Sequence record: NC_042018.1
Direction: 5' to 3' (one strand)
DNA length: 64,000 nt
Made by a program: the position numbers and the translations under genes. Below are positions 59,103 through 64,000 of this stretch, piece after piece. Below the pieces are notes generated by a model. It made no database searches. It had not been told where the DNA came from and saw only the letters and a program-made list of their open reading frames with translations. Numbering within the stretch: position 1 is the stretch's first letter; each line of letters opens with the position of its first letter.

Positions 59103-59654
59103 ATGCAAACTCCTTCAATGTCTCTCGAGGGGAAAGAACTTGTTTTCAATTGGGAGCATGACGAGAAACCTGTGAGCTTCCGTGTCGAACAGGCTAAGTT
59201 CATTCAGCTCGTATGCAAAGCTTGCCGTACGCCGCTGCCGTTGGTGGATGTCTCTAAAGCGTATCAGTGCCAGTGTGGTGCTGAAATCCAACCGGACGGA
59301 TTGAATCACCGTGCTGAAGATTATGGCCGGTGGGTAAGCTACCTTGGGACATGGCGTTGTAAAGACAACTATCAGATTCTGCTGAAAGACGGACGGGTTA
59401 TTGACTACGTCTACCCTAACGGCGGAAGTTGGTACCCTAAAACCAAGGCAGCACAAATCGCGTCACAACCTGAAGGCCGTTACCTCGACGAAGACGTCCT
59501 GGCGGTTCGCCTGGTACTGGACAATGAACTCGAGTCGCGTTATGAGTTCACCGGTAAACAACGTCTTGAGCGTAATGTTGATTACTTCGGTGACGCATTC
59601 CCTACACAAGACCGGGTTATTAACCTGAATGGACAATACGGAATTTTAGTGTGA
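59103..59654 (+). CDS. Hypothetical protein with zinc-ribbon motif
   Basis: ATG at 59103 after aagga. CKAC...CQC. Confidence 0.6.
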   Translation: MQTPSMSLEGKELVFNWEHDEKPVSFRVEQAKFIQLVCKACRTPLPLVDVSKAYQCQCGAEIQPDGLNHRAEDYGRWVSYLGTWRCKDNYQILLKDGRVIDYVYPNGGSWYPKTKAAQIASQPEGRYLDEDVLAVRLVLDNELESRYEFTGKQRLERNVDYFGDAFPTQDRVINLNGQYGILV

Positions 59655-59833
59655 CGCTAGAGCTCGACGTACTCGTCTTTATCTGGGTGTACGGGTGCTT
59701 GGGTGCAGCATTGATTAAGAAAGTCAAATACGACCCGGGAACACCGTACTGGAAAATCTTTCTGATGTACGTGTCGTTACCGTTAACCTGCGTAGTGTGG
59801 GTTGGGGTACGATTGGTGCGTTGGATATTTTAA
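59651..59833 (+). CDS. Small membrane protein (two TM segments)
   Basis: GTGA overlap with the previous gene. Hydrophobic segments LVFIWVYGCLGAALI and IFLMYVSLPLTCVVWVGV. Confidence 0.55.
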   Translation: MTLELDVLVFIWVYGCLGAALIKKVKYDPGTPYWKIFLMYVSLPLTCVVWVGVRLVRWIF

Positions 59834-59842
59834 GAGGTAGCA

Positions 59843-60217
59843 GTGGAAAAGTATAAATACCTTTTGGGACAGACCTCGTCCCTGAATCAGGTGTTCGTGG
59901 TGTTGTCCTCAGCATCCACGTTCACGCACGCAGAACTGGCGTTTAAGTTGGGCATTACTGACATTGTGTCTCAGGGCGAGTTGCTCTCTACTGATCCAGC
60001 GTTTACGCTGCCGGCCAGTGAAGCAGCACACCAGGGCGCAGTTGACGCATTGCCGGACGATCGTTTCTTTACCGCGGATGTTCCTCATTTTAGTTTTGCT
60101 CACCACATCTATCTGAACGTGGCTGAAATCGACGAAGATGAGTTCCACTACCGTCTGAGAAACATGAGTTCGGCGACGCTTCCAGAATCTGGCTTTACCT
60201 TTGCTTCACCTCTGTAA
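59843..60217 (+). CDS. Hypothetical protein
   Basis: GTG start after gaggt; 124 aa. Confidence 0.55.
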   Translation: MEKYKYLLGQTSSLNQVFVVLSSASTFTHAELAFKLGITDIVSQGELLSTDPAFTLPASEAAHQGAVDALPDDRFFTADVPHFSFAHHIYLNVAEIDEDEFHYRLRNMSSATLPESGFTFASPL

Positions 60218-60220
60218 TCT

Positions 60221-60252
60221 ATTACCCTGCCTCCGTAAGGGGGTGGGGTAAT
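60221..60252 (+). terminator. Rho-independent terminator (GNRA loop)
   Basis: ATTACCCTGCCTCC-GTAA-GGGGGTGGGGTAAT. Confidence 0.7.
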
Positions 60253-60303
60253 GTAAAGTTTTACCTCCTTCTTTATATCTATGCGAAAAACAAGGAATAC
60301 ATC

Positions 60304-60570
60304 ATGAATAACGAAACCACCGCTGTAGACGTTCCTGCTCCATTAACCAAAGGTCAGCTGTTGGCTCGCCTTGACCGCTACGGACCGGAATACTCGTTCC
60401 ACAAAGACCTGGTCGCAATCGCCGATTTGGCTGACACGCTGTATACCCGCATGGCCATTAGCCGTAGTCGTCAGCACAACATTCAGATTCGTGCGGCGCT
60501 CTCAAAATTAAGCGTGGCTGTCGATTGGACAGTTACCGTGTTGAAACAAGATATCGTGAGCTACGAATAA
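60304..60570 (+). CDS. Hypothetical protein
   Basis: 88-aa helical ORF with RBS aagga. Confidence 0.6.
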   Translation: MNNETTAVDVPAPLTKGQLLARLDRYGPEYSFHKDLVAIADLADTLYTRMAISRSRQHNIQIRAALSKLSVAVDWTVTVLKQDIVSYE

Positions 60571-60579
60571 GGACACGTC

Positions 60580-61041
60580 ATGGAAAACGTATACTTGCCT
60601 GGATTACGTAATGCCCTGATGCTGGCATTCATTGAAGAAGCCCGCAGTACCGGTAACCAGGTCTACCTGACGTTAAACGCCCGTCGTTTAACTGACCCTG
60701 CATTAGCACAGTACATCAAAGACGGCGTCCTGACCATGAACGTGGCCATTCGTGCTACGCCGGGTTATGACGTTGAACCTGAATTCCTGATTCTGCATTC
60801 TTCCTTTAATGGAAAGAAAGCCCAGGTCTTTGCGTATTACGATGACGTGATGATGATTGTGGCCTATGATGAAACCCGTCAACCACGCGCCATGTTCCAC
60901 ATCACTGACCATCATCAGGTTTCTATCCAGATGGAGAACATCAACGCCGCAGCCTTTACGGAAACCAATCCGTTAGAAGCTGTAAACGAAGAAACTCCAC
61001 CGCCAGCTAAAGAGCGTCCCAAACTCTCTGTAGTTAAATAA
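60580..61041 (+). CDS. sspB: SspB-like ClpXP adaptor (stringent starvation protein B homologue)
   Basis: QYIKDGVLTMNVAIRA and SSFNGKKAQV match the SspB core (EYARDGQIVLNIAPRA; ARFGGIPRQV). An acidic linker leads to the C-terminal RPKLSVVK, which matches the E. coli ClpX-binding tail RPALRVVK. Confidence 0.8.
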   Translation: MENVYLPGLRNALMLAFIEEARSTGNQVYLTLNARRLTDPALAQYIKDGVLTMNVAIRATPGYDVEPEFLILHSSFNGKKAQVFAYYDDVMMIVAYDETRQPRAMFHITDHHQVSIQMENINAAAFTETNPLEAVNEETPPPAKERPKLSVVK

Positions 61042-61050
61042 GGGTGCCGT

Positions 61051-61395
61051 ATGCGTAAATGGTTTTCGGTATTAGGGCGCTACACGGTTGCCCTATGCCA
61101 GCTTGGGTTAAAACGTATTCTTCTTGGTCACCATACGCGTCGCCTCATTAAGAAAGAGGACCGTATCATTCAAGAGTTCGAAAGGGCACTGACGGCACAA
61201 GGCAAAGCTTTGCGTAACCGGGGGTATTTGTCCCGGCAAAGCCTGAAGCACCTTACACTCCATCTGGCAGACGAATTGCACATGCAGAAGTGTCAGATTC
61301 GGAAAGTGACAGTAGAACTCATTGACGGTGATTTCTTTATTGATTTAGAAATCACTACCCATAACCGGACCGTGACCCGTTTGGTCGTTGTGTGA
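61051..61395 (+). CDS. Hypothetical basic protein
   Basis: 114-aa Arg/Lys-rich ORF in the operon. Confidence 0.55.
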   Translation: MRKWFSVLGRYTVALCQLGLKRILLGHHTRRLIKKEDRIIQEFERALTAQGKALRNRGYLSRQSLKHLTLHLADELHMQKCQIRKVTVELIDGDFFIDLEITTHNRTVTRLVVV

Positions 61396-61402
61396 GGACA
61401 AC

Positions 61403-61981
61403 ATGAAAGTATCCATGATTCTGGCTATGGACCGCAACTGTTTAATCGGGAAAGGCGACCAACTTCCCTGGCGTCACCCGGAAGACCTGTTGTGGTTCAA
61501 ACAGCAAACCATCGACAAACCGATTCTCATGGGACGTACGACCTATGAAGGATTAGGGCGTCCATTACCAAACCGCCCCAACATCGTGCTGAGTCGTGCT
61601 GACACTAACTTAGTGGGTGATGTAGCACGGGTGCAGTCGTATGAAGACGCACACTACCTGGCTAAGCAGTTGGGTTATGATGAGCTGATGATTATCGGCG
61701 GCAAGCAGGTGTATGAGTCACTGATTGACCATGCTGACTGTATCTACGTCACGGTCATCGATCACGACTACAACGGTGACGTCCATATGACCCATCCGTT
61801 GTTCGAAGCATTGGCTGGTCGGGACCTCTCTGAGAAGAACCCGGCCTTTACCAATCTCGGCTTTGATCGGTTGTTTACTCGCGACGGTGACGTGAGACAT
61901 GTGTGGGATGTCGAGGTGTTGAACCGTGTCCTTAGCAATGATGTTATGCTCAATTTTGTGAAGCTAACACGTTGCCATTAA
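61403..61981 (+). CDS. folA: Dihydrofolate reductase
   Basis: ATG at 61403 after gagga. ILAMDRNCLIGKGDQLPWRHPEDLLWFK, MGRTTYE, RPLPNRPNIVLS, IIGGKQVY. Confidence 0.95.
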   Translation: MKVSMILAMDRNCLIGKGDQLPWRHPEDLLWFKQQTIDKPILMGRTTYEGLGRPLPNRPNIVLSRADTNLVGDVARVQSYEDAHYLAKQLGYDELMIIGGKQVYESLIDHADCIYVTVIDHDYNGDVHMTHPLFEALAGRDLSEKNPAFTNLGFDRLFTRDGDVRHVWDVEVLNRVLSNDVMLNFVKLTRCH

Positions 61982-61990
61982 GGAAAGGAT

Positions 61991-62425
61991 ATGGGTCTGG
62001 GTTACATCGACGTTAAGCTCGATTCCAAGCAAGAAGATGACTTGATTCGGGACTTAACAACTTTAGGGATTAAAGCTCTACCAAAAGGGAAGTACCACTG
62101 TACTGTCATTTATGACAAACGTGAGGAACTTGATAAGCCGCTGTGCGACATCGACCCTGAGCAAGTCTTTGAAGCACACGTCGTGGAGGTTAAACCACTC
62201 GGAGATGCCCTGGTCTTTACTATGACGTCTAAAGATATCTATGATGAATTTAGACGATTGCAGGAAGCCGGATATCAGCACAGTTTCCCTGAGCTGTTGG
62301 TTCACATGTCAATTTGCTACGACTTCAGTGCGTACGACAAGTTGAAGGTGGAACAGTTCATGGGCCGATGGATAGGCCGCAACATTCAGTTCTCTCGCGA
62401 ATCGTTACAACCCGTTAAGTATTGA
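61991..62425 (+). CDS. acb1: 2H phosphodiesterase, Acb1 (T4 57B)-like anti-CBASS candidate
   Basis: 144 aa with two HxT/S motifs: H36-C-T-V-I-Y and G.QH.F....H105-M-S-I-C-Y-D. The C-terminal RESLQP matches the T4 57B pattern (HSTICY; GATHDF..Y.PHITLSYN; REYKEP). Confidence 0.72.
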   Translation: MGLGYIDVKLDSKQEDDLIRDLTTLGIKALPKGKYHCTVIYDKREELDKPLCDIDPEQVFEAHVVEVKPLGDALVFTMTSKDIYDEFRRLQEAGYQHSFPELLVHMSICYDFSAYDKLKVEQFMGRWIGRNIQFSRESLQPVKY

Positions 62426-62429
62426 TGCT

Positions 62430-62462
62430 CCCCTGCCCTCGTCCTACGGGACGGGGGTGGGG
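62430..62462 (+). terminator. Rho-independent terminator (UNCG loop)
   Basis: CCCCTGCCCTCGTCC-TACG-GGACGGGGGTGGGG. Confidence 0.7.
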
Positions 62463-62482
62463 TTAATCTATAAGAAATTTCA

Positions 62483-62500
62483 TCTCTAAATTATTATCGT
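62483..62500 (+). promoter_or_regulatory. Putative phage promoter motif (degenerate copy)
   Basis: TCTCTAAATTATTATCGT lies directly after a terminator and about 50 nt before the next ATG. Confidence 0.35.
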
Positions 62501-62548
62501 GTATGTAGACCACCTATATACACTTATCCAATCAAGAGGACACAAGTA

Positions 62549-63118
62549 ATGAAAAAGAAAGCGACACATAAATTCTTCCCTAACGGTAAACAAGTGGGTG
62601 AAGCCGTTTCTGCGTGTTTAAACAACATGGTGTGGGTTGCCGGGAGTCACGGTGTATTACCGCCGAACATGAATGTCACTGTGCCGTTCATGCTTACCGC
62701 CACTGACCGCATGATGGTGAAGAACTCCGTGTGCAATATCTTGATCGACAATGAAGCCAGCTGGCAGTTAATTCTGGTGGCCGCTTTCGACAATGCCAAA
62801 TCCCGCTCTTACGTAACGGCGGATATCCATTTGAATCAATGGACCTTGGCTGAAGTTGGGCAGAAGATTATGGAAATCTGTGAAGTCACGGTTCGCAAGA
62901 TGGAAGAAGTGTTCTGTGGTGAAGGCGCAGTTAACCTAAACGATATTCACCACTACGGTTACATGCTGTCGCCTACGCAGGGTCTGAACACTGACGTAAT
63001 CGAAGAGCGGTTAATCGATGCCTTACAAACGGGTAGCTTCGATCACTACGACTGGCAGTCCCGTCCGGTTATTACTCCCAAAGACTTTATTGACTCTATC
63101 GCGGCTGTGAAGATTTAA
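62549..63118 (+). CDS. Hypothetical protein
   Basis: 189 aa with RBS gagga. Confidence 0.65.
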   Translation: MKKKATHKFFPNGKQVGEAVSACLNNMVWVAGSHGVLPPNMNVTVPFMLTATDRMMVKNSVCNILIDNEASWQLILVAAFDNAKSRSYVTADIHLNQWTLAEVGQKIMEICEVTVRKMEEVFCGEGAVNLNDIHHYGYMLSPTQGLNTDVIEERLIDALQTGSFDHYDWQSRPVITPKDFIDSIAAVKI

Positions 63119-63135
63119 GATATAGAAATGTTCAC

Positions 63136-63158
63136 GTCTATATAGTTAGGGTGAATAA
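63136..63158 (+). promoter_or_regulatory. Putative phage promoter
   Basis: GTCTATATAGTTAGGGTGAATAA is identical at 20 of 23 positions to 26210-26232. Both are followed by TTATTCTTA. Confidence 0.6.
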
Positions 63159-63219
63159 GTAATACATATTTATTCTTATAATAACGATATTGACAGTTAA
63201 TCTACTGGAGATAAAAATC

Positions 63220-64000
63220 ATGGCAAAACGTGATATTAATTACGCTGTAGAACGCATCACCAATTCCTTGTCGAATGCAATGAATGGCGGTACGTCGCAA
63301 GAACAACTTCTTGCTCTGTATAAGTCTCGACTGTTTGATGAAGAGCTGGTTGACAAAGATCGTCGCAATCAGGTTCTGATGGCAGTCAATAAAGAACTCG
63401 GCATGGACATCAAGATGCGTGATGTTAAGCAAGCCGACAACACCTTACTTGAACAAGTTCTGGCTAACAGCGGTGAAACCGGGCCTGAAATTGTACAAGA
63501 GCCAAATGACCTTCCTGCTCCTACAGCAGAGTTCATTCTGGCAAACCGGGAAGAGTTCAGTGTGGCTGAAGTTACCAAAGCCGGCATCGACCTCCACTCC
63601 CATCAGGGTACTCAAGTAGCAGACGCTACAGGCCCAGTTTCTGAAGTTAAATCCGCAAACACCGTAAACACTAATTCCACTGAGGATACCGACATGACTA
63701 CCAACGCTTCTAACTCTTACAACACCACTACCTCTACTTCTGCTCAGGCTGACAACAACCACACCGCAGAAGAAGCGCTGAACAAAGGCGCTGAAACCGT
63801 TGACGAAACGCTGAAAGCTGGCGCTGAACAGGCGAAAGAAAAAGCGCAGGAAACGGTTGAGAATCTGGCCGATGAGTCCTTCATGGATAAAGTCAATTCC
63901 ATCCGTCCTGAATACCTGGCTGCAGGCGCTGCTGTAATCGGTGCAGGGGCAACTATCCTGAACGCTGATGCAGTAAACGCTTACAACCTGGCCGGCGGCG
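63220..64000 (+). CDS. 3'-truncated protein missing from the ORF track; internal start at 63694; membrane-like C-terminal region
   Basis: ATG at 63220 follows ggag (MAKRDINYAVERITNSL...). The frame is open to the window end. An in-frame ATG at 63694 follows gagga (MTTNASNSYNTT...), then YLAAGAAVIGAGATIL. Confidence 0.75.
   Translation, partial: MAKRDINYAVERITNSLSNAMNGGTSQEQLLALYKSRLFDEELVDKDRRNQVLMAVNKELGMDIKMRDVKQADNTLLEQVLANSGETGPEIVQEPNDLPAPTAEFILANREEFSVAEVTKAGIDLHSHQGTQVADATGPVSEVKSANTVNTNSTEDTDMTTNASNSYNTTTSTSAQADNNHTAEEALNKGAETVDETLKAGAEQAKEKAQETVENLADESFMDKVNSIRPEYLAAGAAVIGAGATILNADAVNAYNLAGG

Follow-up and report, generated by a model that had tools for sequence, protein, structure and literature searches.

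The Acb1 proteins of phage T4 and Erwinia phage FBB1 are among the closest known relatives of the gene considered here. The catalytic tetrad of Acb1 is formed by H44, T46, H113 and T115, the bases of the ligand stack on Y12, W74, F107 and W147, E141 contacts the adenine N6, and residues 145–152 constitute a lid that closes over the ligand (Hobbs et al. 2022, PMC9117128). The residue numbers printed in that study agree with the sequence of T4 gp57B (NP_049750.1), which was taken here from phage T4T (HM137666.1, L003:487-942). A second solved enzyme, 2H PDE-9 of Burkholderia phage BCSR5 (QRE00328.1), carries a functional lid at its N-terminus (residues 1–15), and cuts 3'3'-cGAMP well and 2'3'-c-di-AMP poorly; cleavage of 3'3'-cGAMP over an hour is still seen after deletion of this lid, and in lid swaps the preference for substrate stayed with the core (10.1101/2025.08.21.671373). 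The same study (Doherty et al.) reports that the substrate range of 2H enzymes differs both between and within structural groups and is determined by the core, that some viral 2H groups are inactive on an 18-compound panel, and that deletion of the lid of T4 Acb1 abolished the in vivo effect tested, the triggering of Panoptes. Cleavage of 3'3'-cGAMP is common to all of the closest solved relatives (PMC9117128; 10.1101/2025.08.21.671373).

In phages that form a nucleus the DNA is protected against restriction and DNA-targeting CRISPR, yet these phages are exposed to signalling and abortive-infection defences, and type III CRISPR with NucC acts on them (PMC13282480). According to the same 2026 review, Tad1 is the sole anti-defence protein described so far in jumbo phages. 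Tad1 of phiKZ, itself a jumbo phage with a nucleus, counters defences that signal through nucleotides and is thereby a functional analogue of the role considered below; it is, however, an unrelated protein, a sponge that sequesters cyclic nucleotides instead of cleaving them, and the likeness is one of function only (PMC13282480). In a 2026 survey of 227 Erwinia phage genomes, acb1 was the commonest anti-defence gene (61 genomes) and was positively correlated with CBASS type I in the survey's data, which implies that CBASS type I was detected among E. amylovora genomes.

The window, that is, the whole stretch of 64,000 nucleotides that was analysed, belongs to the genome of Erwinia phage vB_EamM_RisingSun (NC_042018.1 / MF459646.1; 235,108 bp), and its position 1 is record position 62001. 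RisingSun is distantly related to the phiKZ-like jumbo phages; it has a tubulin-like protein, and its internal head proteins are of the phiKZ type (PMC6034870). Its close relatives fall within the chimallin-encoding Chimalliviridae clade, and nucleus formation has been seen in these relatives (10.1101/2024.10.29.620934). These proteins and relatives justify the description of the source as a phiKZ-type jumbo phage in the initial annotation, which had been made from the letters alone. Window positions 61000–63200 are identical to record positions 123000–125200, and the sibling phage Joad shows 97.7% identity over this segment, with a copy of gp120 that is fully identical at the DNA level. The gene and its immediate features are as follows:

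61991..62425, + strand: coding sequence of gp120, Acb1-family 2H phosphodiesterase (ORF list, annotation, Pfam PF23474, AlphaFold2 model, Foldseek)
61980..61988, + strand: Shine-Dalgarno-like purine-rich run 5' of the ATG, just after the DHFR stop (sequence reading)
62096..62104, + strand: first catalytic motif, H36-C37-T38, equivalent to H44-x-T46 of T4 (sequence, alignment)
62303..62311, + strand: second catalytic motif, H105-M106-S107, equivalent to H113-x-T115 of T4 (sequence, alignment)
62399..62425, + strand: C-terminal end with E137, Q140, P141-V142-K143-Y144 and the stop (alignment with T4, tails of the relatives, PMC9117128)
62430..62462, + strand: GC-rich hairpin 5 nt 3' of the gp120 stop, with no U-tract (RNA fold)

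The reading frame runs from an ATG at 61991 to a TGA at 62423–62425 and encodes 144 amino acids that are identical to annotated gp120 in both records. The TAA stop codon of the preceding DHFR gene (61979–61981) is in frame with gp120 and three codons ahead of its ATG, and a longer N-terminus of gp120 is therefore excluded. Three product names are in circulation for this protein, and they are at odds: 'RNA ligase' in RefSeq, 'putative structural protein' in GenBank and 'Anti-CBASS protein Acb1' in UniProt (A0A223LHU1). The first of them is also attached to homologues in EL, pTD1, Miami, VP4B and others, and its source is likely the PHROGs family to which gp120 is assigned, phrog_755, which is labelled 'RNA ligase'.

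The sole Pfam match of gp120 is PF23474, Acb1 (residues 5–142; E 2.4e-13; 50.5 bits, the gathering score being 27). The models for LigT and 2'-5' RNA ligases (PF13563 and relatives) gave no match even at E values up to 10, NCBIfam returned none, and the only PADLOC match was at chance level (E 0.029). When the single sequence was searched against the PDB, the meaningful matches were 9Q2G (E 0.0025) and 9Q2Y (E 0.044), both deposited as Acb1, the latter being a His-to-Ala mutant of the former. A pairwise BLASTP comparison with T4 gp57B found nothing meaningful (E 8.5), and the relation between these two proteins hence rests on profiles and fold.

A word-indexed protein search retrieved six close relatives, whereas 89 were obtained at E values up to 1e-3 when all of 1.84 billion representatives were searched exhaustively. 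Two proteins with long, multi-stretch matches (P0051 and P0084) proved to be F5/8-type-C repeat or other proteins lacking an Acb1 domain and were discarded. The working alignment comprises gp120 and 73 single-domain relatives; all 74 sequences match Pfam Acb1, and 16 also touch Pfam 2_5_RNA_ligase2 weakly. Compared with the PDB, the profile of this alignment hits FBB1 Acb1 (7T26/7T27) with an E value of 9.5e-19 and the BCSR5 phosphodiesterase (9Q2G) with 2.1e-16.

An AlphaFold2 model was computed from the 74-sequence alignment (mean pLDDT 96.8, pTM 0.89), and adopts the compact 2H phosphoesterase fold. A search of structural homologues with Foldseek placed the BCSR5 phosphodiesterase (9Q2Y/9Q2G) first in the PDB, with an E value of about 1.6e-8 and TM scores of 0.79–0.82, followed by FBB1 Acb1 (7T26/7T27; 1.7e-7 to 1e-6). 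Generic 2H enzymes ranked lower, namely 1VDX (1.7e-4), a plant CPDase (1.5e-3) and E. coli LigT (4e-3), the LigT-type matches being at least four orders of magnitude worse in E value than the Acb1-type ones, with poorer TM scores and rmsd. Among the predicted viral structures of BFVD the best match was gp120 itself (A0A223LHU1), and the other top matches are phage proteins likewise named Acb1. BCSR5 PDE-9, the best structural match (rmsd 2.7–2.9 Å), has the same tetrad as gp120, but differs from it in having its own N-terminal lid and shows only about 20% identity. The LigT, 2'-5' RNA ligase and cyclic nucleotide phosphodiesterase types (1VDX, 1JH6, 5LDM) share the 2H fold and the two HxT/S motifs with gp120; by contrast, they are larger, act on other substrates and have far weaker fold scores.

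Pfam, profile and Foldseek rankings thus agree with the Acb1-like identity that the initial annotation had proposed. Had LigT or RNA-repair 2H enzymes matched better, this would have spoken against that proposal; the comparison was made, and both profiles and predicted fold favour Acb1. On this basis, gp120 is solidly a member of the Acb1 family as Pfam broadly defines it. This had been recognised before, since UniProt already names the protein Acb1 and the Pfam threshold is passed. The RefSeq and GenBank names look wrong, support for either of the functions that they denote being essentially nil, and the correction of two misleading public names is one outcome of this analysis. In practical terms this is a modest advance: family, fold and mechanism were known beforehand, and the correct label is already in the databases. 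In our assessment gp120 is an ordinary Acb1 member, notable only for a missing lid and for its setting in a nucleus-forming jumbo phage.

The two HxT/S motifs on which the initial annotation had relied are present, and the complete tetrad (H36, T38, H105 and S107) is found in gp120. The two His are separated by 69 residues, exactly as H44 and H113 in T4 gp57B, in line with the T4-like spacing that had been claimed. Both His are invariant in all 74 aligned sequences and Thr38 is kept in 73 of them, which argues against a chance occurrence of the motifs; position 107 is Ser in 60 sequences and Thr in 14. The residue-by-residue correspondence with T4 gp57B (alignment A2) is as follows:

T4 Y12: gp120 Y5
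T4 H44 and T46: gp120 H36 and T38
T4 W74: gp120 L70
T4 H105: gp120 H97
T4 F107: gp120 F99
T4 H113 and T115: gp120 H105 and S107
T4 E138: gp120 E137
T4 E141: gp120 Q140
T4 P142-L143-K144-L145: gp120 P141-V142-K143-Y144
T4 146–152, including W147: no counterpart in gp120

The C-terminal register is secure, as the alignment is gapless there and is anchored by Arg-Glu before and by Pro-x-Lys after the positions of interest. Like T4 Acb1 and FBB1 Acb1 (7T26/7T27), gp120 shows the Pfam family, the compact 2H fold, the tetrad and the His–His distance, and the T4 residues Y12, F107, H105 and E138 are kept; it differs in lacking the C-terminal lid, W74 and E141 of T4 Acb1, and in having a helix (residues 114–126 in model and alignment) that T4 gp57B lacks. 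Two of the four base-stacking aromatics are retained (Y5 and F99), whereas W74 is replaced by Leu70 and W147 is absent. Leu occupies the W74 column in 57 of the 74 sequences. The C-terminal Glu highlighted by the initial annotation, E137, does exist, but it is not the base-reading Glu of the T4/FBB1 type, because it aligns with T4 E138 and the E141 column holds Gln140. The E137 column is Glu in 49 of the 74 sequences, and the residue is best read from the alignment as a conserved structural Glu. At the E141 column, Glu is found in 30 of 74, and the position varies even among the close relatives.

The absence of the Trp-containing lid, also noted at the outset, is real. The protein stops at the position of T4 L145, seven residues past E137, and no Trp is found beyond the last strand, so that nothing equivalent to the T4/FBB1 lid (145–152, with the stacking Trp147) is present. 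Truncation is not the cause, because all close relatives of gp120 measure 142–145 amino acids and have equally short tails. The terminal Tyr144 was considered as a substitute for Trp147, which is unlikely: the close relatives end in Asp, Pro, Phe, Gln or Lys at this position or do not reach it. A lid of the PDE-9 type, of about 15 N-terminal residues, is likewise missing; four residues precede the conserved Tyr in gp120 versus about 18 in PDE-9. As judged from these sequence features, gp120 is not of the T4/FBB1 subtype, since lid, W74 and E141 are all lacking, nor of the PDE-9 subtype with the N-terminal lid.

When N-terminal extensions of at least 11 residues were counted as such, 45 of the 74 aligned sequences had neither lid type, 23 had the N-terminal extension only, three a T4-like tail only, and three had both. 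By this count, the lid-less form is the commonest in this gp120-centred sample and no oddity, and yet no lid-less enzyme has been characterised in the literature. The protein accordingly bears on the question of how lid and core contribute to the choice of substrate. The 75 viral 2H enzymes considered by Doherty et al. include YP_009599317.1 of pTD1 and WEM33190.1 of EJP2, neither of which was purified (10.1101/2025.08.21.671373); they are 31% and 37% identical to gp120, respectively. A literature search on gp120 and its clade retrieved no report of enzyme activity, and the supplements of Hobbs et al. hold no mention of RisingSun, Joad, EL or pTD1.

From homology, we infer that gp120 is probably a small, cytoplasmic and metal-independent Acb1-family phosphodiesterase that linearises cyclic-oligonucleotide alarm signals. 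By analogy with T4 Acb1, FBB1 Acb1 and the BCSR5 enzyme, H36 and H105 would serve as general acid and base, T38 and S107 would grip the scissile phosphate, and Y5 and F99 would provide the stacking surface for the bases. No metal would be needed for the attack of the neighbouring 2'-OH on the 3'-5' phosphodiester; the 2',3'-cyclic phosphate formed as an intermediate would be opened in a second step. In this way, cyclic di- and trinucleotide signals would be linearised before cell-killing effectors are switched on, with gp120 acting in the cytoplasm, in the putative counter-defence role that the initial annotation had also proposed, while the phage nucleus shields the phage DNA. The absence of both lids, the Leu in place of W74 and the Gln in place of the adenine-reading Glu suggest that the pocket is more open than that of T4 Acb1 and that base preference probably differs.

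Several observations count against this mechanism. The protein keeps only two of the four stacking aromatics and does not have the Glu that reads N6, and its gene belongs to a block for replication and nucleotide metabolism (DNA ligase, RNase H, DHFR), not to an obvious anti-defence island. Furthermore, loss of the lid abolished the in vivo effect tested for T4 Acb1, and some viral 2H groups are inactive on the 18-compound panel (10.1101/2025.08.21.671373). A more specific proposal, which we regard as possible but doubtful, is that gp120 stands for an Acb1 lineage that lacks a lid by nature and has been inherited at one fixed locus in the EL/RisingSun/pTD1 branch of nucleus-forming phages, and that its open pocket and its Leu and Gln replacements would shift or narrow the range of substrates; in one variant, 2'3'-c-di-AMP might be spared so that Panoptes is not tripped.

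The missing lid and the same replacements, together with the variability of position 140 among close relatives, would also fit an Acb1-family enzyme whose natural substrate lies outside the classic CBASS set, be it an activity narrowed to cA3, one that spares 2'3'-c-di-AMP, or one directed at another nucleotide messenger. The core-determined differences in range reported by Doherty et al. between and within 2H groups (10.1101/2025.08.21.671373) are in keeping with such a shift, as is the use of cA3 by NucC-coupled CBASS and by type III CRISPR, which restrict nucleus-forming phages (PMC13282480). However, no feature of the sequence indicates a specific alternative and the closest solved relatives all cut 3'3'-cGAMP, which makes a non-classical substrate unlikely. 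The position of the gene beside ligase, RNase H and DHFR lends itself to a different reading, namely a LigT or cyclic-phosphodiesterase-type enzyme that processes nucleic-acid ends in RNA repair or replication together with the neighbouring ligase and RNase H. The phrog_755 and RefSeq labels, the weak contacts of 16 of the 74 aligned sequences with Pfam 2_5_RNA_ligase2, and a fold that is common to LigT and CPDase agree with it. We consider end-processing distinctly improbable, given that gp120 itself has no match to the LigT or 2'-5' ligase models, that its model scores far better against Acb1-type than against LigT-type structures (1.6e-8 versus 4e-3, with better TM and rmsd), and that 144 amino acids fit the compact Acb1 type and not the LigT type of some 175–185.

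That gp120 is a virion structural protein, as in its GenBank annotation, is very hard to credit. In some distant relatives an Acb1 domain is indeed joined to a portal or DarA-like virion protein, but gp120 is a free-standing 144-residue enzyme domain with no extra module, and it is never mentioned in the mass-spectrometry report on the RisingSun lysate (PMC6034870). The preferred reading of gp120 is that of a signal-linearising Acb1-family phosphodiesterase.

Comparison of gp120 with a relative on a metagenome contig (75% identity) gave a dN of 0.17 with saturated synonymous sites, which indicates that the gene is under constraint. It stands at the end of a block of genes in the same orientation, which includes gp108 (NAD-dependent DNA ligase), gp112 (RNase H), gp117 (SspB-like) and gp119 (DHFR). 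The order ligase, RNase H, Acb1-like gene is common to Pseudomonas phage EL and Vibrio phage pTD1; in EL the gene directly 5' of the Acb1-like one codes for a DHH phosphoesterase. Three RisingSun-like contigs from metagenomes have DHFR in this position, and two of the three (L007 and L008) have RNase H further 5' within the retrieved locus. Since the position of the gene is kept in EL, pTD1 and the RisingSun-like contigs, the fixed locus points to vertical inheritance in that nucleus-forming branch and not to a recent pick-up. That several nucleus-forming lineages share a conserved, syntenic gene of the Acb1 family suggests degradation of signals as a long-standing part of their strategy.

A tblastn search found relatives of gp120 in 95 phage records, of which the 60 listed are genomes of 184–366 kb. 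Among these 60 are EL-like, pTD1-like, Miami-like, Serratia BF-like and Aeromonas phages, as well as genomes of 337–366 kb from phages of Escherichia, Salmonella, Klebsiella and Erwinia (EJP2, Munch, Hallingskeid and similar); phiKZ is absent from the 60 of 95 records listed. Genomes of the T4 type were reached only when a more T4-like family member was used as the query. A near-identical relative, P0001 (94% identical to gp120), is entered at NCBI under Salmonella enterica on a contig of 232,793 bp that looks like the genome of a RisingSun-like jumbo phage inside a bacterial assembly.

The gp120 stop is followed by a spacer of 123 nt (62426–62548) before gp121, which includes the GC-rich hairpin at 62430–62462. 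The predicted folding energy of this hairpin is −31.6 kcal/mol (z = −4.7), and it is likely, judging by its fold, a transcript-end or stability element. A look-alike GC-rich hairpin occurs right after the gp115 stop (near 60218–60250), again with no U-tract; both share GGGGGTGGGGT, followed by T(T)AAT. With at most one mismatch, the 11-mer of the hairpins occurs four times on the + strand against 0.75 expected. A scan of 59500–63300 for sigma-70 promoters and intrinsic terminators performed no better than on shuffled sequences and missed the hairpin behind gp120. Possible roles of the two hairpins are to terminate transcription by the phage's own polymerases or to stabilise the RNA that these make.

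Within the block, gp117 (window 60580–61041) resembles SspB, a ClpXP adaptor, with a Pfam score of 27 bits that is exactly at the cut-off and a PHROG match of 3.2e-64, and is from its sequence a candidate for an unusual host-takeover factor in a jumbo phage. The DHH-family phosphoesterase of EL is gp125 (L004:2000-3238), and DHFR occupies its place in RisingSun; a nanoRNase-type enzyme of this family beside the Acb1-like gene could finish the linear products. About 3.7 kb 3' of the Acb1-like gene, two of the RisingSun-like contigs (L007:8142-8435 and L008:8142-8435) have a gene whose product contains an AcrVA2-like domain (Pfam) and which stands after the genes of an Rv2179c-like exonuclease and an acetyltransferase. 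The equivalent in RisingSun is gp126 (record 128143–129144, beyond the window), named 'putative mycothiosynthase' in RefSeq.

The Acb1 domain is also found in larger proteins, such as a 771-residue fusion with a phage portal (P0069) and a 912-residue fusion with DarA_N (P0058), and residues 482–596 of the portal structure of cyanophage Pam3 (PDB 8hds) match the Acb1 profile. As far as their domain content goes, these fusions suggest delivery of the enzyme together with the virion in some phages.
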